Part shown: positions 1 to 13,238 of the stretch, piece by piece
How the letters are laid out: the number at the start of each line of letters is the position of its first letter
Numbering within the stretch: position 1 is the first letter of the stretch
From: Vitrella brassicaformis CCMP3155
Lineage: Eukaryota > Protista > Chromerida
DNA: 64,000 bases
Assembly (NCBI GenBank): GCA_001179505.1
Contig: CDMY01000257.1
Location: 62,001 to 126,000, forward strand
Direction: 5' to 3'
Translations under genes and position numbers: made by a program
Notes under the pieces: model-generated
What the model was told of the DNA's origin: nothing
Database searches by the model: none
The model's input: only the letters and a program-made list of their open reading frames with translations

Positions 1-3000
1 GGATCCAGCGATTACGGCCTGATGGCTGTCTCGTCATTTGAGCCCATCTTACGTCAGGAAAGCGTCGTCCGGCTTGAGGAAATCTTCATCGGCCCTCAAG
101 ACAAATGGCCTTCTGGCCAGGCATTGAATCTGCACGCCTGACAACAGACAGGTGGTGACCTTGCCTGTGAGTACTTGATGCAATACTGTTTGTCGTACCT
201 TCTTTCGGAATGTCGCAGACTTCTCTCAAGTGACCGCTTACTCTCGACTGGAAATCTATGCCGCCGCGGCCTTGCCTCGTATACATACGAAACCAACTGT
301 CGACGAATGTGGTGTTGTCCTCGGAATCCGCATTGTCAACCGACAGTAAGGGAAAGCTGAATAGTGACGCGTTAACGAATTCTCCATCCTCCAACTTGAC
401 AAGTGCCGTTCCATTCTTCCGGTAGGTCAGTGTCTTTGGGGGCAGCAAGCAGCTCTCAGCAGAGGTATTGCTGGGAGGAGAAATAATGCTGTACTGCATG
501 GTGCCGACAGGGGCACTTGACGTGAAGATCTGCACAAAGCAGTCAGCAGACATGCCCTCATTGATGCAGTGATGAGTGCGTAGCCGCATTACCAGTTCAG
601 GCGTGATTGACTTCGTGTCGTTGGTTCCAGCTCGGTTGAAGAAGTCTCTGATGGTGGGGAGATACGACGTAAGAGCCGGATAACTACCCTCTTCTCCCTG
701 AGGCTCAAAACTCAAGCCGCCGGCAAGAGTGCCTATATGATTGAGAGACACAAGCCGAGCACACAAAAGCGTACACGTACTCCTCTGAATGCGTCAAAGC
801 GTACCTTCAACGAACATCAGAGTGCCTTCGCACTCTTCGGGCGACACCTGGCGCACCGTCCCCTTGAAGTCAACATTGGCGAAGCCAACCTGTGGCTGGT
901 CATCATCCCCTGGGGCTCTCAGTGCGATCCGTCCATCCAGAGCCTCGACATCATATCTGATCCGCACTTGCAAGTCGGCGTCGTCTCCCTCGCAGCTGAA
1001 GGCTTGTACGAAGGCCTCTGTCCCACTGCCCCTTTCCCCCCGAGCCCGGAATATCCAAAGACAAGCGGTACTGTTAGGGTCCACTCCTGTGTCATTGACA
1101 TCTTCCGCGGGAAGGTCGGCAGCGGTACTGTCAGGGTCCACTCTTGGTTTGAAGTCGGTCATGCGGTAGCTTGATGGCTGGGCTGTACTGGAGGCATTCA
1201 GGACAATCTCAGGACATGCCTCGACTGACACAAGCAAAAGATATGACGAAGCAACAACAGAAAGCGACAGCAAGTCAGCTGTGAGTCATTCTGATTGCTT
1301 ACAGCATTCAAACCCAATCACACAGCGATTAGGCAGGACATCCCCGTCTCCCATGGCAAAATCGCTGAACCTCTCGGTGCAGTTGTTGATCGTTGGATCC
1401 TCACGTGTCGAGAACATCTCGACCGAAGCGTTGATCCGCTGCTCAGAGCCTCTCGTTATCCCCTTGCAAGTATGATTTCCATCGGGAAAGACGAAAACAC
1501 ACGTGTCAGCTCCAAGGAGTCCTTCGTTGGGCGCAAGAGCAACACTCACAACCTCGCCAGTTAAGCTGGGATCAACGAGGGCTTGAGCAGATAGGCCGTC
1601 ATCGCCAGGTTCAAAGTCGACGGGAAGGTTTGGGAGCCTTAATCCTCGGCAATTGGCCAAGACTGCAGACACACGCATCAACGGCAGGACAGTCAACCGT
1701 CTTTGCGTCTCAGCCAAGAGACAAGAAGAGAGAAACATGCTTGTCACGCGCCTAGCTGGTGTCATTGCCATGTACCTTCTCTTCCATCGATCAGATTTCC
1801 CAGCTGGCCCTTCACACAGCGGCAGCACACAGACAGACATATGTGTGGCTGCTTCTTGAGAATGAACGGAGTACCTTCAGAATCAGGTCAAGTGACACGC
1901 CCGTCTCCGCGCTGAAGAGGTCGAACGATCGAGGCCCCTTTGTATCGGACACATTTGAACATAGCACAGACTTATTTCCCACAGGGAACTTGACGTCTAA
2001 GTCCAAATCGTCCAAACACGACACGTCGTCATCCGTGATGACAAAGAATCTGTCTCCGATTGCGGCGCTGCTGAAAGACAGGTCTGGCGACTGCTCCGGC
2101 TTGTACAGGGGGGAGAAGATGGTCGGCAGGACCTCTCCTAGAAGGGCACGGCTGAAATCCTCGCGAAGAATTACAGATGTTCCAGCTTGTTCTGGACGGA
2201 CCTCAGTCACGCTGTCCTCACTCATATCGGCCGCACTCACACATATCTCACTGCACTCCCGAAATGCATCTTGATTGTCGAAAGCGAACTGACTGGCCTC
2301 CAGGGGGTTCTGACGATGTGAAGGGAAGCGAGACATATACGTGCATATGAGGTCCCCCTATCTACCAGTGCCGTACCTTTCGGATAATTTCGCCAGACGT
2401 CGTGTCCCTTCCATATCCTGAGGCAGCCAGTGCAAGGATGCCGCCCGCCTCGGTCTCGCCAGATGTCACTGAGAACGCTCGCTGGTTGAGCAGGACATCA
2501 CATTCATCAGGCACATCATCGGGGAATGTCAGGAGGCCGAGACTCGTGTTGGCTGAGGGCGAGAGAATGCCGATCGCCCGTGCAGTGACAAGATCGTCCT
2601 GTGTCTCGTTGCCGATGATGAGAATCCGCTGGGTCTGGTTGTACTCGAATTGCTGAGCGATGAGAGACTCCGACTCGTCCACGAAACCCGTCAAGGTGAC
2701 CTCGATCTGCGCCTCGATTCCCTCGCACACCGGGTTGCTGGCGTTCTCGACGACCAGCACGCCCTGAACTGTGGCAACTGCAGGCTGGAGGGCATTGCCG
2801 GCTCGATTGGAGCAGAGGCCGGTGTCGGGGCAGGTGAACTGGAGGGTGACGCTAACGCCCTCTGTCGTGTTGCACGACAGGTCCACAAAGAAGTCACCAA
2901 GTCCATTATCATCGTCACTCTTGCCCTGGATCCTCATGCAGCTCGACACGTTGGCGCCGGTGTTGTTGACTGTCGGCAGATAGGCGTCAGAGCTCACGTC

Positions 3001-3917
3001 TTCGAACAAATAAGTGCCGGGCACCAACTGAGCGAACGTCGCCTCTTGCGGAACAGGGGGCTCTTCGTTTGGCTTGACGCTCTGCTCTCGTGGGTTGGGC
3101 CCAATGTCTTCCCTTCTCTCGACGACGGGCAGGCTGCCCGCACAGTCAAAGGGCACGGCGAAGCGGTTGACGGCATTGAAGCACGGATCCAGCTCGGCCG
3201 GGAAACACAGAGACGATGGCTGGCCGCTGGCGACGCCCCTCGTTAAGCTGACATCGCCGCGCGAGAAGTTGGCCACGTCGCCGAACAGACCCACTTCCTC
3301 CTCGATGCAGTAGCAGAAGCGGGAGTCGCTCGTGCGGGCACAGATGGGCTTGTCCGACGGGCAACTGACAGACAGGCGCACGAAATTACGGTGCCATACT
3401 CATTGAGCAGTTCCTACCTTCCCAGTGCCGCAGTGCCCAGATCGGTGATGTTTGTGCCATTGACGCCGCTCGGCTCGCCACAGATAATGGACTGGTTGCC
3501 GCTGGTCGCAGTGACATTGCCGAAAGTATCCGAGTCCTCATTGTTCAGCGCATCTGTCTGTTGCTCCTTGAGTAGTCTTCTTGTGGTATTCTCATAGAAG
3601 CACTGGCCGAAGTTGCCCAGAGTGATGTTGTCGACGATGGGCAGCAGCGCATTGGCCTCGCACGCCGCGGCGATCTCACCGCGCGGGAGGACGGCTGAAG
3701 AAGCGAAAGGCATTCATATCCACTTGTTGTTCACGTGCCCTCTGTTGTGCTTACCCGGCTGGCAGTCTGCGTTTGTTTCGGTCGGCTGTCCGTCGTCGTC
3801 TGTTCTTGTGTTGTTGGTCAGACAGGCCGTCGTGAACTGAGCTACAGCACCCTTCCTCTCCCATTGGCTCAGCAGAACGGACAGCACCGCAGCCACAAGC
3901 CAAAAGGCTCTCCGCAT
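1..3917 (-). CDS. Large secreted acidic Cys-containing glycoprotein, copy A (multi-exon; 3' end probably runs off the window start)
   Basis: ATG at 3917 gives a signal-like leader MRRAFWLVAAVLSVLLSQWERKGAVA|QFTT. In-phase GT-AG introns checked at 3754-3695, 3417-3365 and 2376-2310 join ORF-track segments 3414-3713, 2362-3381 and 1812-2336. Further exons lie in 1286-1840, 794-1273 and 86-766, then GVQIQCLARRPFVLRADEDFLKPDDAFL with a GTAAG donor near 51, conserved in copy B. Many N-x-S/T sequons. About 1,100 aa in the window. No family recognised. Confidence 0.85.
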
Positions 3918-3981
3918 AAAATCGTGATCACAAGAATTTACTTCAGCCGTTGCCACACTGTACAATGCAAAGGAAACAAGA
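3918..3981. promoter_or_regulatory. Very short divergent intergenic region shared by large gene A and peptide A, with conserved motifs
   Basis: CAAGAATTTAC, CAGCCGTTG and CTGTACAAT occur in the same order in 9662-9724. The first two also occur upstream of copy C (12261-12303). Confidence 0.55.
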
Positions 3982-4361
3982 ATGAGGCTCTTCCTTTTTC
4001 TCTTCGTTTCCTCCGTCCTTCGGGCAGCTGGAGAGATGAGTGGTCTGCCGCAGACGCGTCGGGAGGGCGCGCCGGACCGTCGTTCAATCTTGGTTTCGTC
4101 TGCACAGGAGAGCTCCGGAGGACGTGCTGCTGAAGACGCCGCCCACCACGGCGCCCTTCTCGGCCAAGATGGTGGGCAGAGTACAACACCTACCATATTG
4201 CAACCCGACGATTGCGTGCATCAGATACCCTCCCTTCTCGTCGCCTGCAATTCGATGATGAGCCCAGGCCGATGCAGTTTCAAGGCATCTGCTGCACCGA
4301 TTGTATTCCTCTATACGGCACAAGTGCTTGTTACGACGGTAACTGTATTGAAAGTTGCTGA
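3982..4361 (+). CDS. Small secreted six-cysteine peptide precursor, copy A (108 aa; exons 3982-4171, 4225-4361)
   Basis: MRLFLFLFVSSVLRAAG leader. A phase-1 intron (4172-4224, GT...CATCAG) gives ...LGQD-DTLPSRRLQFDDEPRPMQFQGICCTDCIPLYGTSACYDGNCIESC*. Intron position, phase and Cys framework match the copies at 9725 and 12304. Confidence 0.85.
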
Positions 4362-5452
4362 GGACAAGAGAGCCAGGCACGCCTTTAGGTCAGTTTCAGT
4401 GACCCGCGTTGCGGAAAGATTCGCGTGTAGCATGATTAGTGTGTGACCAATGTGTACAGCAGTCTCTATGGCTTATTGCACCACATTTTTCCTGGTGCTT
4501 TGTCATTGGGAAACCTTTTGTCATTGGGAAACTTTTTGTTGTGACTGACTGGGTGGGACGAACGGACGGGAAGGGACCTTGCAAAATACTGAGCAGATTC
4601 GGTGTGACGCTGTGGCCCTCATCCAGCAGTATAGTTACTAGCACTGCTGCTGGTTTTGTGGACCGTGCTCCGTGAGCCGTCACTTTCTTCAGTGGATGAC
4701 TTTCTCTAGTGTCCATGGGGCGAGACAATAACATGAGGGGTTGGAGGGCATCTCACGTCCCTTGTCGCGGACATGCAAAGATCTACATGTTCGTGCATGC
4801 ATCAATTCGTGGAAGCAATGGGTGGCCCCCATGTACAGACAAGAAAGATATGAGTGACAGGGGCCATTCATGTGGACACGCAAAGTGGGACAGACATGCA
4901 CCGCGGCTGTGAATGTGACAGCGCTGCAGACTTGGTTACATGATGCGTCCATGGCTGGATGATTTCAAATGCCAACACCGCAATAAGTCCAACCACCCTT
5001 GATTGACACATCCATGCACACAACGAGACGAAATGCGTCCCAGCCAACACATGCACGCACACGACGAGACTGCGGTCTCCAACGCACACCGACACATTGA
5101 ATGGCGTGTCAAACACGCCCACACAATCTGATGTACAGTCGGTGGACACGCAGACTGACAAATACGCCACTGTGGTGCACCTATGCAGTGCCCATGGCAG
5201 ACAAAGAGACAGTCATCAACTGCACACACTCACACACACAGGGAGAAAGAAAATGACGCCGTCAGAGGAATCACCACAATGTGTCTCTTCCACTTGCGTA
5301 CCTTCCAACAGGCGACAGGCGCGTATGTCTTCAGCCATACGTATCGCAGATAATGCGATCACAGAAAATAAGAAAAATCCCTCCATTGACGAGAGAAAAA
5401 ATGGGGACATGACTGTCGAATGTGGTCTTGCCCACTTCCCCTTTCGTCACTT

Positions 5453-8400
5453 TCACGATGATATCTCGCCGTCTTCCGTCTGCCCAGCAGGCGTCGGTCT
5501 CTGTCGCTCACCCGGGATAAAACAGAGGGTCAGAACAGGGCATAGCTGCTCAAGTCTGTGGGTCTTGCCATCGTCGGTGGGGGCCTCGACAAAGAGGGGA
5601 ATCGTCCGCACAATAAAGCCCCTAGGCCTGTCAAAAGCCTCTACTTTGCGCTCGACATCAGCAAGCGAGCAGCTGAGATTGAACCCGTCTGGCGACTGGA
5701 GCCGCAAAGCGGGATCAACGCCGTTTGGTGTCTGCACTTGGGCGACAGAGCTTGATGGACGGAGACACATACGGAACGGGAGCACACGGCAAAAGGACAG
5801 TGCTGATGTTCTCGCCATTTATGCGATATCTTACCTCAATTGGAAATCGTCGTCCGGCTTGAGGACAGTTTGATTGGCCTCCAGGACAAATGGCTGTCGG
5901 GGGAGACATTGGATCTGCATGCCTGATCGACCGAAAGGCACCCTTGCGTGTGAGCACGTAACGGATTACAACGTGTCGTACCTTTCTCAATATCACATAC
6001 TTCGCCCAACTTGCCACCTATTCTCGACCAAAAGTCTCCGCCGCGGCCTCGCCTCCCCGCAAACATTCGAACCTCGCTGTTGACAAGCATGGTGTCGTCC
6101 TCGGGTCCCGAATTGCCAATCGACAGAAAGGGAATGTTGAATGAAGCATCATTGGTTTCATCCTCCGGAGGTCCATACTTCCGGTGGGTCAGTCTCGCTG
6201 GGGGCTGCAAGCAGCTCTGAGGGGTATCGTCAGGGGCAGAAACAACGTCGTACTGCATAGAGCCGAACGAGGCACTTGACGTCCAGACCTGCATAAAACA
6301 GTCACTAGACATGCCCTCCTTGCTAATGTATACGTGTGGCAGTATTACTAGTTCAGGCAGGATCGTGTCATCGACTCCAGCTTCGAAAACGTCCCTAATC
6401 GTGAGGAGATACGTCCGACTCGAAACCGGACCAAGGGGCTCTTCTCCCTGAGGCTCAAAACCCAAGACGCCAGCAAGAGTGCCTGTGTGAAGCGACACAA
6501 GCCGGACACAGAGAGGCGTACACGTACTTCTCTGAATGCGTCAAAGCGTACCTTCAACGAACATCAAAACCCCTTCGCAGTCTGGGGGCCAAACCTGGCG
6601 CACCGTCCCCTTAAAGTCAACATTGGCGAAGCCAATTTCGGGCTCCTCGTCAAGGCGTCCATCGAGAGAGAGCGGGATCTGTCCATCCAGAGCCTCGACG
6701 TCGTATCTGATCCGCACTTGCAGGCCAGCCCCTTCCTCGTCCGGGTCGCAGCTGAAAAGGGCCCGAAAGTCCTCTGCACCTGGAGTGTTTTCTGTCTCGA
6801 GGCAGTAACTGACATCTGTGCCATTGACATTTTCCGCAGGAGGGTCAGTCAGGAAATAGCTCGATGGCTGGGCGGTCAATGGGGCGGTTAAGTTGACCTC
6901 AGGACATGCCTCAACTGACACAAAGCAAGAGAGACGAGGAAGCACGAACATGATGACACACCCAACGCGCCAGTGACTGAGCTGTGACTTATTCTGATTG
7001 CTTACAGCATTCAAAGCCAATCACACAGCGATTAGGCAGAAAATCCCCGTCCCCCATGGCAAAATCTCTGAGCCTCTCCCTGTACCTCTCGGTGCAGCTC
7101 TTGTTTGTTGGATCATTAGCAGTCGAGAAGATCTCGACAGAAGCGTTGATCCGCTGCTCAGAGCCTGTCGTTATCCCCTTGCAAGTATGATTTCCATCGG
7201 GAACGATGAAAACACACGTGTCATCACCAAGGAGTCCTTCGTTGGGAGCAAGAGCAACACTAACAACCTCGCCAAATGAGGTGGCATTAACGAGGGGTCG
7301 AGCATATAGGCCGTCATCTTCAGGTTCTAAGTCGACGGGGAGGTTTGGGAGCCTCAGTCCTCGGCAATTGGCCAAGACTGCAAACACACGCATCAATTGC
7401 AAAACGACCAGCCATCTCCATCTTCACCCCTCAGCCAAGAGAACTCAAGAAAGAAACACACATGCTTGTCACGCCACTGAGCGACTGCCTGGTGCCCGTA
7501 CCTTCTCTTCCATCGATCAGATTTCCCAGCTGGCCCTTCACACAGCGGCAGCACACAGACAGACACGTGTGTGTGGTGTGGCTCGAGAATGACTGAAGTA
7601 CCTTCAGAATCAAATCAAGCGACACGCCTGTCTCCGCGTTGAAGAGGTCGAACGATCGAGCATCAGACGCATTTGTACACAGAATGGACACACGGACTTG
7701 AGGGAACCTGACGGGCAAGTCTAACTCGTCCAAACACGAAAAGTCGTTTTCCGTGATGACAAAGAATCTGTCTCCGATTGCGGCGCTGCTGAAGGATAGG
7801 TCTGGCGACAGAGATTCTGGCTTGTAAAGGGGGGAGAAGATGGTCGGCAGGAGCTCTCCTTCGAGGGTACGGCTGAAATCCTCGCGAAGAATAAAAAATG
7901 ACGGAGCTTGTTCTGAACGGACGCCAGTAACATTGTCGTCACTCATATTCATCTCGTTCACACATATCTCACTGCACTCCCGGAATGCATCTCGATTATC
8001 GATAGCGAACTGACTGGCCTCCAGGGGGTTCTGACGATGTGAAGGGAAGCGAGACATACACGTGTATATGAGCTTCCCTTATCTAACAGTGCACTGACCT
8101 TTCGGAAAATTTCGTCAGATGCCGTGTTTCTTGCATATCCTGAGGCAGCCAGTGCAAGGATGCCGCCCGCCGCGGTCTCGCCAGATGTCACTGAGAACGC
8201 TCGCTGGTTGAGCAGGACATCACAATCACCAGGCACGTCATCGGGGAATGTCAGGAGGCCGAGACTCGTGTTGGCCGCGGGCGAGAGAATGCCGACAGCC
8301 CGTGCAGTGACAAGATCGTCCTGTGTCTCGTTGCCGATGATGAGAATCCGCTGGGTCTGGTTGTACTCGAACTGCTGGGCAATAAGAGACTCCGATTCGT

Positions 8401-9661
8401 CCACAAAGCCCGTCAAGGTGACTTCGATCTGCGCCTCAATTTCTTCGCATGCCGGGTTGCTGGCCTTCTCGACTTGCAGCACGCCTTGGATGGTGGCGAC
8501 GGCCGGTATCAGTTCGTTGCCAGTGCGATTCGAGCACAGGCCGGTATCGGGGCAGGTGAACTGGAGGGTCACGCTGACGCCCTCTGTCGTGTTGCACGAG
8601 AGGTCTAGGAAGAAGTCATCGAGCCCATTGCTGTCGTTCTTCTTGCCCTGAATCCTCATGCAGCTCGACACATTGCCAGTGCCCACGTTCTCGATGGTCT
8701 GCAAATAGGCGTCAGAGGGCACGTCTTCGAACAGGTAAGTGCCGGGCACCAGCTGGGCGAACGTCGATTCTTGCGGCACGGGAGGCGGGTCGTTTGGCTT
8801 GACGCTCTGCTCTCGTGGGTTGGGCCCAATGTCTTCCCTTCTCTCGACGACGGGCAGGCTGCCCGCACAGTCGAAGGGCACAGCGAAGCGGTTGACGGCA
8901 TTGAAGCACGGATCCAGCTCGGCCGGGAAACACAGGGACGATGGCTGGCCGCTGGCGACGCCCCTGACGAGGCTGACATCGCCGCGCGAGAAGTTGGCCA
9001 CCTCACCGAACAGACCAATGCTCTCCTCGATGCAGTAGCAGAAGCGGGAGTCGCTCGTGCGGGCACAGATGGGCTTGTCCGACGGACAACTGACAGTCAG
9101 GCACACACGGAAGAATGATGGTGCCATCACATGAGACGAGCAGTCCGTACCTTCCCAGTGCCGCAGTGCCGAGGGCCGCCGCCGTGATGTTGCCATCTTC
9201 CACGACACTGGGCTCTCCACAGATAATGGACTGATTCTCTCCTGATGCGCTCACGTCGCCGGCGGTCTCCTCATCGGTGGTCAGGGCATCTGTCTGTTGC
9301 TTCTTGAGCTCTTCCTGGGCGTTATCCTCATAGAAGCACTGGCCGAAGTTGCCGAGGTCGGGGTCGTCGACGATGGGCAGCAGCTCATTGGCCGCACAAC
9401 TCGAATACATGATCTCATCACCATCTTCGCCAGGGATCACGACTGAAGAAGCGAAAGCCATTCACAACAGCTTGTTGTTCACGTGCCTCTGTTGTGCTTA
9501 CTTGGCTGGCAGTCTGCGTTTGTTTCGGTCGGCCGTTCGTCGTCGTCTGTTCTGTTGTTGTTGCTCAGACAGGCCGTCGTGAACTGAGCCACAGTACCCC
9601 TCCTCGCCCATTGACTCAGCAGAACGGAAAGCAACGCCACAAGACGGAGGGCTCGCCGCAT
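5453..9661 (-). CDS. Large secreted acidic Cys-containing glycoprotein, copy B (tandem paralog of copy A; exact 3' end uncertain, could extend to about 4.9-5.3 kb)
   Basis: ATG at 9661: MRRALRLVALLSVLLSQWARRGTVA|QFTT. Exon-by-exon collinear with copy A (ORF-track segments 9003-9461, 7958-9220, 7431-8057, 6989-7402, 6541-7020, 5836-6498). A GTAAG donor near 5833 splices in phase into SSVAQVQTPNGVDPALRLQSPDGFNLSC... (5453-5818). Confidence 0.85.
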
Positions 9662-9724
9662 ACGAAAAAGCGCAACGCCCAAGAATTTACGTACATCACA
9701 GCCGTTGAGCTGTACAATAGCAAG
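9662..9724. promoter_or_regulatory. Very short divergent intergenic region shared by large gene B and peptide B
   Basis: 63 bp between the two ATGs, with the same conserved motif trio as 3918-3981. Confidence 0.55.
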
Positions 9725-10245
9725 ATGAGGCTGTTGGTCGTCTGCTTCGCTCTGTCCGCGCTCCGTGCGCGTTCCGGGTTGAATGCCCCATCACGTCAGG
9801 ACCCCCCGGCCCCCCCTCCGTCCGCGGCGGCGTCAGTGCAGGAAACCGCAGCAGTGCATCCGTTCACCGACGAGACCGACCGCGGTCGAGGCGCCACCGG
9901 TCAAAATGGTGAGCAGAGAACGACACAGAACCGGCACTGCTTCTGTGGACGTCTGGGTGCATGATGCGTCGTACAGATCGCCCTTTTCTCCGTCGTACGC
10001 AGTCCGACTCCGACAAGAAGGCCAAGCCAGAGCAGGATTATGACGAGGTCTGCTGCGATGATTGTGTGTATTACGCCCGAGTCAGTTTATGCGAATTGTA
10101 CTGCGATGATGACTTTTGCTGATGACGAGACATCCGCCTTCAGGCCAGGTTGTAGTGCCGCGTTGCGCAGAGATGTATGTACAGCCGTCTCTGTGACCTC
10201 CTGTGCTTCGTCACTGGTGAACTTTTTGTGTCGTGACTGACTGGG
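9676..10245 (+). repeat. Recent segmental duplication; partner at about 12261-12800
   Basis: Shared sequence starts at CGCCCAAGAATTTACGTACATCACAGCCGTTGAGCTGT (9676 and 12261). Near-identical through exon 1 and the intron. Homologous with indels in the 3' flank (e.g. CTTCAGGCCAGGTTGTAGTGCCGCGTT in both). Confidence 0.95.
9725..10122 (+). CDS. Small secreted six-cysteine peptide precursor, copy B (109 aa; exons 9725-9908, 9977-10122)
   Basis: MRLLVVCFALSALRA leader. Phase-1 intron 9909-9976 (GTGAGC...GTACAG). Spliced C-terminus: DRPFLRRTQSDSDKKAKPEQDYDEVCCDDCVYYARVSLCELYCDDDFC*. Confidence 0.88.
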
Positions 10246-10742
10246 GCACACACACACGGGCAGCGACATTGTCTCACCCATGACTGTCTCACCCATGAAC
10301 ACGCAGCTTGTTTCGCCGAAAGCACGCATTAATCTCTACTAGACATCTACTTATGGACAGCGCAGTGGAGAAAGACGTGTATAGGTCGTCGACGTCAAGT
10401 GTGGGCACACAGTGACAACTGCCGTGCACCGCGTGACCCCTCACTAATGCGTCAATCAACGGATGCCGTCGGTCAGCCGACGAAGACACGCTCTCGAGCG
10501 TGTCGATGTGCTGCTTGCTTATGTGACAATCAAATCGCACACACAACAGCCAACGGACACGCAGAAATGCAAGCGCTCGCCGTCGGCGTGCTGTTCTGTA
10601 TACTCACACATGGGGCAATCCACCAGAGGGGTGTTCCACTGTCCGAAGCACGTGTCGCAAAAGGCTGACATCGACACAACAACACGACATACACGGACGC
10701 AGAAACAGACAAGTGGTCGACACGTGGTGGTGGCTGACCCAC

Positions 10743-12197
10743 CTAAGTGTTTGCAGAAGGAGTTGGGTTGGCTGCCCGACAGTCCATCGTCTGACGAGCG
10801 TGTGGCCCTATGTTTGCTGGCTGGCTCCGTCTCCCCTTAGCGGCCAGACCATCGATGATCGCCTCACGCCGCGCTACCTGAGAGACACACCACCGACAGA
10901 CCCGTCCAGCGGTGCAGACACGCCATCACTCGACCACTGTGTGCGCGTGCGCGTCCGCACCTCCGCCTGCAGTCGACTCTTGTCCTCGGCGAGGCGGCTG
11001 CTCTCCCCCGTGGCCTCCCTCACCTCTTCCACGAGCTTCTCATTCATCCCCCTCTCCCTCTCTACGTCGCTCTCCAGCTCCTTCACCCGCCCAATCAGCA
11101 TGTCGGTCGCCCTCACCCGAAGGGTCTCGTACACACGGGCAGTCTTGTGCGTTGTCTTGTCTTGTCTTGTCCTGTCTTATCTTGTCCTGTGCTGTTTTGT
11201 CGGTCGGGGGTGGCTCACGGGTCAGGGTGGTTGGCTTTGAGTTCCTTGATCTGCTCTTCAGCGTCTACCAGGCGCTTCTCGGCGCCATGCTTCTCCTCCA
11301 AACACCTGAACCAAGCATAGCACATGGATAGACAGAAATGTGCCCAGACACACGCAGGCGAGCGCACCTGTTGTATTTGTCGTTGATGTCGGTCGCGTAT
11401 TGCATCAGCCGCTCACTATCCCGGATCTGCTGCTTCAGCTGCGACTGGCTCGTCGCGCAGTAGCCAGACAAATCGCCACAATTCCATACAGACAGCACAC
11501 AGCACAACAGATGCCGACAAGTCACGAGCTGGTGCCTGTGTGGGGTGAGGGAGGTAGCTGTCGATTCGGTCTTTGAGCTCCTGTATCTCCCTCTGCTTCT
11601 CGCGCAGCTTCCGGCTCAGCTGCAGGTTCTCGTCCCTCAGCTCGACATGCTCCATCAGGTTGCGACTGTCCTCCGTGCGCATAGGTACTAGTAGGGGGTA
11701 AGGAATGGGCTCACTGAACACACACAAACATCACACAAGGCATACACACGCCACCCAGCCCATCGCGTTTTGCCGTGTTTGTTACCTGACAGCGGCCTCT
11801 TCCATCGAGCTATCGCCAGACAGGTTATCCAACAGCAGACTGCTACCGCGCCCCACCGCCACGTCACCGCTACCGTCACACCCGTTCTCGCCCTCCCGCC
11901 CCTGCTCCTCCCACCTTGCCTCTCCCTCCTCTCTCCCTGCGCTTCTCTTCCTCCATACTCGCTATTCGTCTCGTCCTGTGCCGCCACAGACGCCTCTTCC
12001 TGCTCGCGCGAGCTGCTGCTGCTGCCGTTGAGCAGCGCCTCACGCAGCGAGAGGGACTGTGCAGCAGGTGGGATCCCATTGTTGCAGCCTTCTTGTTCTC
12101 TGATTGAGCCGAAACAGGCTCCCAGCCGCCCCGCACCCGAAGGGGGCGTCTCACGGTCGTTGGCCGAGGCCGGCATGCTGCTGCTGGAAAGCCGCAA
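10743..12197 (-). CDS. Multi-exon coiled-coil protein of unknown function
   Basis: Exons encode heptad-rich E/K/R/L segments: NLMEHVELRDENLQLSRKLREKQREIQELKDRID, SQSQLKQQIRDSERLMQY, LEEKHGAEKRLVDAEEQIKELK, LIGRVKELESDVERERGMNEKLVEEVRE, RLQAE|VARREAIIDGL. They are separated by GT-AG introns. Start is 12197 or 12176. Confidence 0.7.
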
Positions 12198-12303
12198 CCG
12201 GTTTCGGGCAAGCAGGAGACAAGCAAAAGTGCTTCAATGAACAAGAGAGCTCCTCGGTGCCGCCCAAGAATTTACGTACATCACAGCCGTTGAGCTGTGC
12301 AAG

Positions 12304-12704
12304 ATGAGGCTGTTGGTCGTCTGCTTCGCTCTGTCCGCGCTCCGTGCGCGTTCCGGGTTGAGTGCCCCATCACGTCAGGACCCCCCGGCCCCCCCTCCGT
12401 CCGCGGCGGCGTCAGTGCAGGAAACCGCAGCAGTGCATCCGTTCACCGACGAGACCGACCGCGGTCGAGGCGCCACCGGTCAAAATGGTGAGCAGAGAAC
12501 GACACAGAACCGGCACTGCTTCTGTGGACGTCTGGGTGCATGATGCGTCGTACAGATCGCCCTCTTCTCCGTCGCACGCAGTCTGACTCCGACAAGAAGA
12601 CCAAGCCAGAGCAGGATTATGACGAGGTCTGCTGCGATGATTGTTTTTATTACAGAAATGTTCGTGACTGTTACGATCAGTGCAATGATGACTTTTGCCG
12701 ATGA
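12304..12704 (+). CDS. Small secreted six-cysteine peptide precursor, copy C (110 aa; exons 12304-12487, 12556-12704), orphan copy
   Basis: Exon 1 differs from copy B by one base (N20S) and the 68-bp intron is identical. Spliced C-terminus: DRPLLRRTQSDSDKKTKPEQDYDEVCCDDCFYYRNVRDCYDQCNDDFCR*. Confidence 0.88.
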
Positions 12705-13238
12705 CGAGACAGCCAACCCGTCTTCAGGCCAGGTTGTAGTGCCGCGTTCAGTGCCGCATGCATTGTCACTGGTGAATTTTTTGTCTTGTGACTGGCTGGG
12801 ACGCCCACCGACGGGCAGGGACCTTGTGAAATGCTGAACACAAACCCGTTTCGTGTTGTGGTGTGGCTCTGGTGACTTCTGCTGCTGGTTTGCGGACCGT
12901 GCTTCGTGAGCCGTCAGTGCGTGAAGCGACACCTCACTTTGTGAGGCAATGAGTTTCTCTCCACGTGCGTTGAGAGAGACAGTGACATTCGAGATATACC
13001 GGAGAGAGCGGCCTGTACAGCACGACCAGACGGTGCAGCAGCGGTGTGTGTGGACAGGGAACCAAGTACACATGAGATGAGGAGCGGTGTATACACAATT
13101 GTGTCAACAGTCATCATGCCAGCAGTTGGTGCTTTGGCACGGTGATAGATTCTGACATACACAAAATGCTACCGTGAGGCACTGGCAGACAGACAGACCT
13201 AGTTCGCTCTCTAGAGCCCAACAGGATGTCTGTGTCCT

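Follow-up and report, generated by a model that had tools for sequence, protein, structure and literature searches.

Do the two secreted products of a head-to-head gene pair act together, or are their genes simply held side by side by the very short stretch of DNA between them? This question is raised by the left end of a 64,000-nucleotide stretch of the chromerid Vitrella brassicaformis CCMP3155, an alga of coral reefs (contig CDMY01000257.1, hereafter C257, positions 62001-126000, within a 72.7-Mb assembly of 1064 contigs), to which we refer as the window. There, an 11-exon gene for a large secreted protein on the minus strand stands head-to-head with a two-exon gene for a small, cysteine-rich prepropeptide, and this unit of ~5.75 kb occurs in two tandem copies, A and B, with start codons at 3917/3982 and 9661/9725. 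We found that the same pairing recurs at deeply diverged loci across the genome, with both genes transcribed and spliced in the window and apparently kept under selection—an arrangement that may reflect a functionally coupled secreted module. A preliminary description of the window, made from the letters alone, had proposed the tandem two-gene duplication and placed five start codons at 3917 and 9661 (large genes) and at 3982, 9725 and 12304 (peptide genes). All five positions are correct and the duplication is real: direct repeats with a start-to-start distance of 5.69-5.79 kb and 74-97% identity cover most of positions 1-9700, and BLASTN, with 8 kb of left flank added, aligned window positions -1029..3918 to 4782..9662 at 79-84% identity.

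The product of large gene A (1..3917 and on to the left of the window, minus strand) is P0001, a public V. brassicaformis CCMP3155 protein of 1171 amino acids that maps exactly to the DNA through introns with GT/AG borders. Its exons in the window lie at 3917-3755, 3694-3418, 3364-2377, 2309-1875, 1809-1776, 1662-1303, 1224-805, 732-593, 529-199 and 137-53, and the last coding exon falls at window positions -29..-311, so that the gene extends past the left edge. Large gene B (4453..9661, minus strand; 1155 amino acids) was modeled by transferring the exons of A, which yielded GT/AG junctions and an open frame with coding exons at 9661-9502, 9442-9151, 9089-8099, 8030-7602, 7535-7502, 7377-7006, 6914-6552, 6482-6349, 6288-5982, 5922-5835 and 5750-5453; the stop codon occupies 5453-5455, and the 3' untranslated region (UTR) runs to ~4453 with an intron of its own at 5220-5301. 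Both large genes thus have 11 exons with GT/AG at all junctions. The transcripts of large gene B and peptide A are convergent, and at ~4453-4469 their 3' ends abut or overlap. Proteins of the large family are acidic (isoelectric point, pI, ~4.2) and carry 37-48 cysteines and 14-29 N-x-S/T sequons, and no transmembrane-level hydropathy segment and no hydrophobic or glycosylphosphatidylinositol-type tail was seen in the large proteins A, B and A', the last being a further paralog described below. The large protein of the module, at ~1150 amino acids, has 38 cysteines and 19-29 of these sequons. The secretory leaders that had been proposed for both products hold, as judged by inspection and hydropathy, the only means by which signal peptides were assessed here.

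The peptide genes all lie on the plus strand and share one layout. In peptide gene A, exon 1 (3982..4171) encodes the signal peptide and a pro-region, a 53-nucleotide, phase-1 GT..AG intron follows (4172..4224), and exon 2 (4225..4361) encodes P-S-R-R-L and then a core of the form CC-x2-C-x8-C-x4-C-x3-C (4290-4358), with the stop codon at 4359-4361 and a 3' UTR reaching at least 4469. Peptide gene B (9725..10122) consists of exon 1 at 9725-9908, a 68-nucleotide intron at 9909-9976 and exon 2 at 9977-10122, with the core CC-x2-C-x8-C-x3-C-x4-C at 10051-10119 and the stop codon at 10120-10122. A third, solo copy, peptide gene C (12304..12704), comprises exon 1 at 12304-12487, an intron at 12488-12555 and exon 2 at 12556-12704, with its core at 12630-12701; upstream of its start codon only ~45 bp of the B spacer are retained. 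The spliced prepropeptides of A, B and C measure 108, 109 and 110 amino acids, against 93-110 across the family, and all three end at, or one residue past, the sixth cysteine of a CC-x2-C-x8-C-x3/4-C-x3/4-C core of 22-24 residues. In the A/B-type copies the intron is always in phase 1, with a GGTG(A/G)G donor in which the exon ends at the first G and a CAGAT acceptor in which the next exon starts at AT. The peptides are acidic (pI ~4-5.8), with cores containing 26-29% cysteine and acidic residues equal to or outnumbering basic ones in six of the seven peptides examined, that of L015 (one of the loci introduced below) having neither. Public gene models of the peptides are incomplete or wrong: P0015 (92 amino acids), the model on peptide C, uses the first intron and splices out most of the sequence of the cysteine loops, and is probably a mis-annotation.

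Transcript evidence came from two RNA-like runs, X1 and X2, available as contigs, which we regard as RNA-like because they contain canonical intron joints that are missing from runs X3 and X4, both of which cover the introns unbroken. The joint of peptide A, 4170 to 4224, was present at depths of 27 and 145 in X1 and X2 and absent from X3 and X4, and that of peptide B, 9907 to 9976 (GT..AG), was seen in both RNA-like runs and in neither of the others. The introns at 4172-4224 and 9909-9976 are thereby confirmed, and with them exon 2, for which the preliminary description had asked for RNA support. In large gene B, CT..AC joints in X1 and X2 confirmed six introns (5751-5834, 5922-5980, 6287-6346, 6482-6550, 7378-7501 and, in the 3' UTR, 5220-5301), and loose contig ends at 6914 and 7006 agree with a further predicted intron at 6915-7005. 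Both genes of the pair are therefore transcribed and spliced, and the intact spliced frames claimed at the outset stand for the large genes as well as for the peptides. A loose end at 4355 bears exon-2 sequence of the fourth peptide copy, A', which shows that A' is transcribed too. No peptide C-specific letters appeared in X1 or X2—weak evidence that this copy is less expressed. Contig depth, which is only a rough guide to abundance, ranged from 27 to 429 for the peptides and from 2 to 10 along most of large gene B, with an increase to 35-90 toward the 3' end.

To what family does the large gene belong? Searching the genome with its 339-residue third exon returned 31 exon matches at ~20 loci (at least 20): about 15 close paralogs with 69-91% amino acid identity, on contigs C257, C770, C297, C502, C764 and C481, and five divergent paralogs with 40-53% identity, on C130, C332, C429, C279 and C869. 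When all exon pieces were used in tblastn searches, the N-terminal half proved conserved, the C-terminal half reached only 27-55% identity between subgroups, and the overall pattern was mosaic. A HMMER scan of the same 339-residue exon against 1.84 billion representative sequences gave seven strong matches, all of them proteins mapping to Vitrella paralog loci, together with two weak ones to bacterial repeat proteins over ~40 residues; when P0001 or a profile of the family was used in word-indexed searches, only Vitrella proteins came back. On these searches, the family is apparently restricted to Vitrella. It has no meaningful match among Pfam, NCBIfam or PDB profiles, and a Pfam search up to E = 1 with the exon pieces and seven full-length members gave only a few matches, far below the gathering thresholds and to unrelated families. 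The paralogs P0010 and P0011 carry a UniRef name of thyroglobulin type-1, a domain that Pfam did not detect up to E = 1; by inspection, only a C-Y-C-I stretch in these two proteins resembles the CWCV signature of thyroglobulin. An AlphaFold2 model of P0001 built on a 10-paralog alignment reached a mean predicted local distance difference test score (pLDDT) of 36, too poor for a fold search.

The peptides are equally isolated. They have no homologs outside Vitrella and none in the ESM Atlas, and Pfam, searched up to E = 10 with eight peptide exons and P0015, matched none of them. Among PDB sequences, a peptide profile came closest to the Euplotes pheromone En-6, without reaching significance (E = 0.3), and a Foldseek search of the PDB with the peptide model (pLDDT 65) found nothing. 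Among candidate classes, an insulin-like A chain was ruled out by the lack of B-chain cysteines upstream and thionins by a different cysteine spacing, and for the conotoxin superfamilies there was no Pfam, significant PDB sequence or Foldseek match.

Whether the pairing recurs genome-wide bears on the idea of a ligand linked to its partner, and the preliminary description had proposed this as a check. We listed the open frames upstream of each large-gene paralog, applied a looser cysteine framework and looked for open frames with a signal peptide. The pairing was seen in nine of the 12 close paralogs with a readable 5' flank (A, B, L008, L009, L010 and L012-L015): at each, a divergent gene 63-272 bp upstream encodes a signal peptide and a cysteine-rich peptide. 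The small genes at L009, L010 and L012-L015 have leaders of the MRFLWF…, MRFLRF…, MSLLWF… and MTLMWC… types, closely followed by a canonical GT…AG intron, and their products end in cysteine-rich sequence. Across loci the peptides are so diverged that only three things can still be recognized: the leader, the P-x-R-R-L processing motif and cysteines in a CC…C…C…C…C framework. Even the loops of the core vary in length, some cores starting with CCC-x3-C and others following CC-x2-C-x4-C-x3-C-x3-C. Searches of the genome by DNA or by protein turned up just four peptides of the A/B type itself, A, B, C and A', the last located at C257:14306-15062, head-to-head with a large-gene paralog that starts at ~15078.

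No dispersed peptide gene came to light. Every peptide paralog found elsewhere adjoins a gene of the large family, and genome-wide DNA, protein and pattern searches placed peptide genes only at such loci, the local copy C excepted. A DNA pattern for the leader MRFLW[F/C] had four genome matches, all four at large-family loci (the reversed control pattern had two matches). A protein search of the genome with the 29-residue leader exon missed known relatives and is not a census. Two loci are more elaborate. At L009, a second peptide gene (L009:1464-1960, C257:~126.9-127.5k) adjoins a 5' fragment of a large gene of ~35 codons, an incomplete copy of the module that parallels the solo copy C. At L014, a predicted gene model on the minus strand (~2050-2887, C770:~82.5-83.4k) contains three six-cysteine units of the form CC-x2-C-x4-C-x3-C-x3-C in a polyprotein-type layout. 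Segmental duplication has thus carried the module to nine loci or more.

What separates the two genes is similarly compact. The 64-bp spacer between the start codons of pair A (3918..3981), which carries a TTTAC…GTAC motif and a YAACGG site, is taken to be a bidirectional promoter, and the 63-bp spacer of pair B (9662..9724) has the same motifs. In eight pairs the distance from one start codon to the other is 63-133 bp; two further pairs have longer spacers, of 205 and 272 bp. Spacers from different subfamilies do not align with each other; even so, TTTAC occurs in all 11 homologous spacers (shuffled mean 2.1), always in the peptide orientation, and YAACGG, which we take to be a Myb-type consensus, in 10 of the 11 (shuffled mean 1.25)—counts that are not independent of one another, as the spacer copies are related by descent.

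A second conserved element lies within the peptides. A D-x(1-2)-P-x-R-[RHQ]-[LT] motif lies ahead of the mature sequence in A, A', B, C, L013, L014 and L015, taking the form RRL in A, L015 and L014 (three times), RHL in A', RQL in L013 and RRT in B and C; at L014, D-D-x-P-x-R-R-L separates the repeated units. The peptides at L009, L010 and L012 are without an RRL-type motif. Vitrella is a close free-living relative of the apicomplexans (PMC4501334), and the protease ASP5 of Toxoplasma cleaves at RRL (PMC4764566). The RRL or RxL motif by which substrates of ASP5 and plasmepsin V are recognized (the Toxoplasma and Plasmodium export elements, TEXEL and PEXEL) is present in A, A', L013, L014 and L015, although candidate cleavage by a dibasic convertase after RR would fit the peptides equally well.

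How the two genes have diverged bears on whether both are maintained. The identity between A and B is itself mosaic—89% in exon 3, 92% in the 3' flank, 72-78% in exons 7-11 and 58-71% in introns 8-10—and synonymous divergence (dS) along the large gene ranges from 0.10 to 0.82, a pattern consistent with an old duplication whose copies later underwent gene conversion in the 5' half of the large gene and in the 3' flank. The ratio of nonsynonymous to synonymous divergence (dN/dS) of the large gene is 0.37-0.44 overall and 0.5-0.93 in the C-terminal third, which speaks for fast evolution rather than proven positive selection. Peptide genes A and B share 45-55% identity in coding sequence, a divergence near or past that of neutral sites. 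Fast evolution is seen in the peptide cores as well: the 19 core codons compared between A and A' contain 12 nucleotide differences, every one of them nonsynonymous, beside a 3' UTR with 96% identity. Peptides B and C are 99.5-100% identical in exon 1 and the intron and 68% identical in the core, where dS is raised as well, so that a gene-conversion boundary accounts for much of this contrast. The six cysteines are nevertheless kept in every peptide copy, with the stop codon directly after the last cysteine or 1-2 residues past it. These constraints—open frames, a large-gene dN/dS of well under one, and preserved peptide cysteines and stop codons—suggest that both genes remain under selection. 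A tree of the conserved exon is star-like, supporting only a clade of L013, L015 and L016 and the split from the divergent subfamily; this shape is probably due to gene conversion and means that the tree cannot date the pairing.

Do these data amount to a functional pair? Conserved linkage of the kind expected of a ligand and its partner was found: nine deeply diverged loci have each retained the two genes intact, and the searches brought up no dispersed peptide gene. Secretory leaders are common to both products, TTTAC and YAACGG are kept across subfamilies whose spacers do not align, and the processing motif is conserved. On this basis, we consider it an even chance that the two genes form a functionally coupled secreted module of the ligand/partner type. 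In such a module, the peptide would be released in the secretory pathway at D-x-x-P-x-R-R-L/T, by a dibasic convertase or a protease of the ASP5/plasmepsin V type, and would then fold with three disulfides and work outside the cell with the large protein of the adjacent gene, as ligand and binding partner; the many diverged pairs could represent matched specificities for recognition or defence. A more ambitious version, which we hold to be rather unlikely as it stands, would have the matched pairs at multiple loci diversify in step for recognition between cells (zoospore, gamete or kin), with release at a TEXEL-like RRL and ASP5-type effector maturation already present in a free-living relative of the parasites. 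Several observations weigh against coupling. L007 and L017 resemble the B locus minus ~520 bp, with the peptide gene cleanly missing: sequence from downstream of peptide B (10320-10440) recurs at L007:4114-4234 and L017:5985-6105, 140-290 bp upstream of the large genes at C257:~3.9k and C502:~61.8k, as if the peptide gene had been deleted there from a B-like arrangement. The upstream searches found no peptide gene at L011 or at the five divergent paralogs, and peptide C lacks a large partner. The dN/dS of the large gene stays below one, neither fold could be modeled confidently, and peptide transcripts appear far more abundant, by contig depth, than that of the large gene, from which it follows that the shared spacer does not impose equal output. 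When P0001 (residues 205-1160) was co-folded with the product of peptide A exon 2, the outcome was 'no answer' at a score of 0.00, which counts neither way.

In a second account, the two products have unrelated functions and each family is kept for its own sake while the very short spacer holds the genes together. With a separation of ~64 bp, and spacers of 63-133 bp in most pairs, any segmental duplication carries both genes and may keep them linked passively. Vitrella genes that lie close together are head-to-head above chance, mostly with only modest co-expression of the two members (PMC4501334). Each gene also occurs without the other, and duplication history alone explains why the peptide subtype tracks the large-gene clade. 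A mere hitch-hiker, however, should decay, whereas frames, splice sites and cysteines are preserved at nine loci at which neutral sites have fallen to 58-71% identity, and the peptide family, copy C aside, is never met away from a large-family gene. We accordingly regard passive linkage as a serious possibility that falls somewhat short of an even chance. An improbable third account casts the peptide as a toxin or antimicrobial and the large protein as its carrier or as a means of self-protection. The conserved leader with a hypervariable, cysteine-framed core does resemble venom and defence peptides, and a multi-unit precursor at one locus and abundant peptide transcripts would suit that role; yet the acidity of the peptides is unlike that of most membrane-active antimicrobial peptides, the protector would have to be a secreted protein of ~1150 residues that is apparently far less transcribed, and neither sequence nor fold matched toxin or immunity families. 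The cysteine content and the predominance of acidic residues would also accommodate extracellular metal- or calcium-binding peptides beside an unrelated wall glycoprotein, but an even and invariant number of cysteines, i/i+4 spacing and secretion fit structural disulfides better, and the loops are hypervariable rather than holding conserved ligand positions and contain no histidine, which leaves this account very improbable. Least credible of all, to the point of being nearly dismissed, is that the small gene is a divergent promoter-associated transcript with an accidental open frame. Its product is short, without homologs outside Vitrella and without a family match; nonetheless, all four close copies, which differ at 30-55% of their nucleotides, keep the phase-1 intron, the six cysteines and a stop codon immediately behind the last cysteine (a single residue further on in C). 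The transcripts are spliced and abundant, and diverged copies elsewhere have the same layout.

Set against known systems, coupling of the two secreted products finds partial parallels only. Like SCR/SP11 and SRK/SLG at the S locus of Brassica, the Vitrella pair links a gene for a small, secreted cysteine-rich peptide to one for a large, glycosylated extracellular protein, and in both cases the two partners have hypervariable parts and are inherited as a unit. However, Brassica SCR is an eight-cysteine, defensin-like protein, while the Vitrella peptides have six cysteines in a CC-x2-C-x8-C-x3/4-C-x2-4-C arrangement without a Pfam match; SRK and SLG carry lectin, S-locus-glycoprotein and PAN domains (SRK also a kinase), whereas Pfam (up to E = 1) detected no B-lectin, S-locus glycoprotein, PAN or kinase domain in the Vitrella large family; the large protein is, by hydropathy, without a membrane anchor; and Brassica variants are alleles of one locus rather than, as here, at least nine paralogous loci in one genome. 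In Dictyostelium, tgrB1 and tgrC1 are head-to-head genes with a shared promoter region that belong to a large, rapidly diversifying, lineage-specific family and encode extracellular matched partners. The Vitrella pair is alike in orientation, in the shared promoter region and in its fast-diversifying, lineage-specific family, but the tgr products are both large transmembrane proteins with immunoglobulin-like folds, as opposed to a peptide of ~25-40 residues and a soluble partner, and no homology was found between the two systems.

Other likenesses concern the peptide by itself. Conotoxin prepropeptides likewise combine a signal peptide, a pro-region and a C-terminal, cysteine-framed core, with conserved leaders and UTRs and hypervariable loops; they differ in coming from a venomous animal rather than an alga, and to our knowledge the CC-C-C-C-C framework of Vitrella is not among the known conotoxin frameworks. 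A, L014 and L015 have a proline-preceded R-R-L immediately before their mature part, which resembles the motif in substrates of ASP5 and plasmepsin V (TEXEL RRL, PEXEL RxLxE/Q/D); the peptides of L009, L010 and L012 have no such motif. Euplotes pheromones are also small, acidic, three-disulfide secreted alveolate proteins with prepro precursors and high variability, although their cysteine pattern is different and they have no linked gene for a large partner.

The module matters since chromerids serve as the free-living reference point for the evolution of apicomplexan parasites, and their extracellular signaling, recognition and defence are barely known. What it offers is at least nine pairs whose secreted products evolve fast, conserved motifs in the shared promoter region, and a candidate processing site similar to the parasite export motif. 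Should the two products bind each other, they would represent a new system of recognition or defence in eukaryotes, made up of two families unique to Vitrella; should they not, the module would be a clean example of short head-to-head spacers locking unrelated genes into joint family expansion.

The surroundings of peptide C complete the picture of the locus. The preliminary description had it standing alone at 12304, which is correct in that no large gene accompanies it and wrong in that it is head-to-head with an unrelated coiled-coil gene: a minus-strand, multi-exon gene at 10870-12200 lies ~130 bp from the C start codon and includes coiled-coil-like open frames such as 11416-11727 and 10874-11134, so that C has a different neighbor and not none. 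Far from the module, at ~41125 on the minus strand, lies an open frame rich in cysteine and histidine (CC-x2-C-x3-C-x4-C-x2-C…), which may be due to chance. A short (GTCTT)n microsatellite of 11.6 copies occupies window positions 11142-11201.

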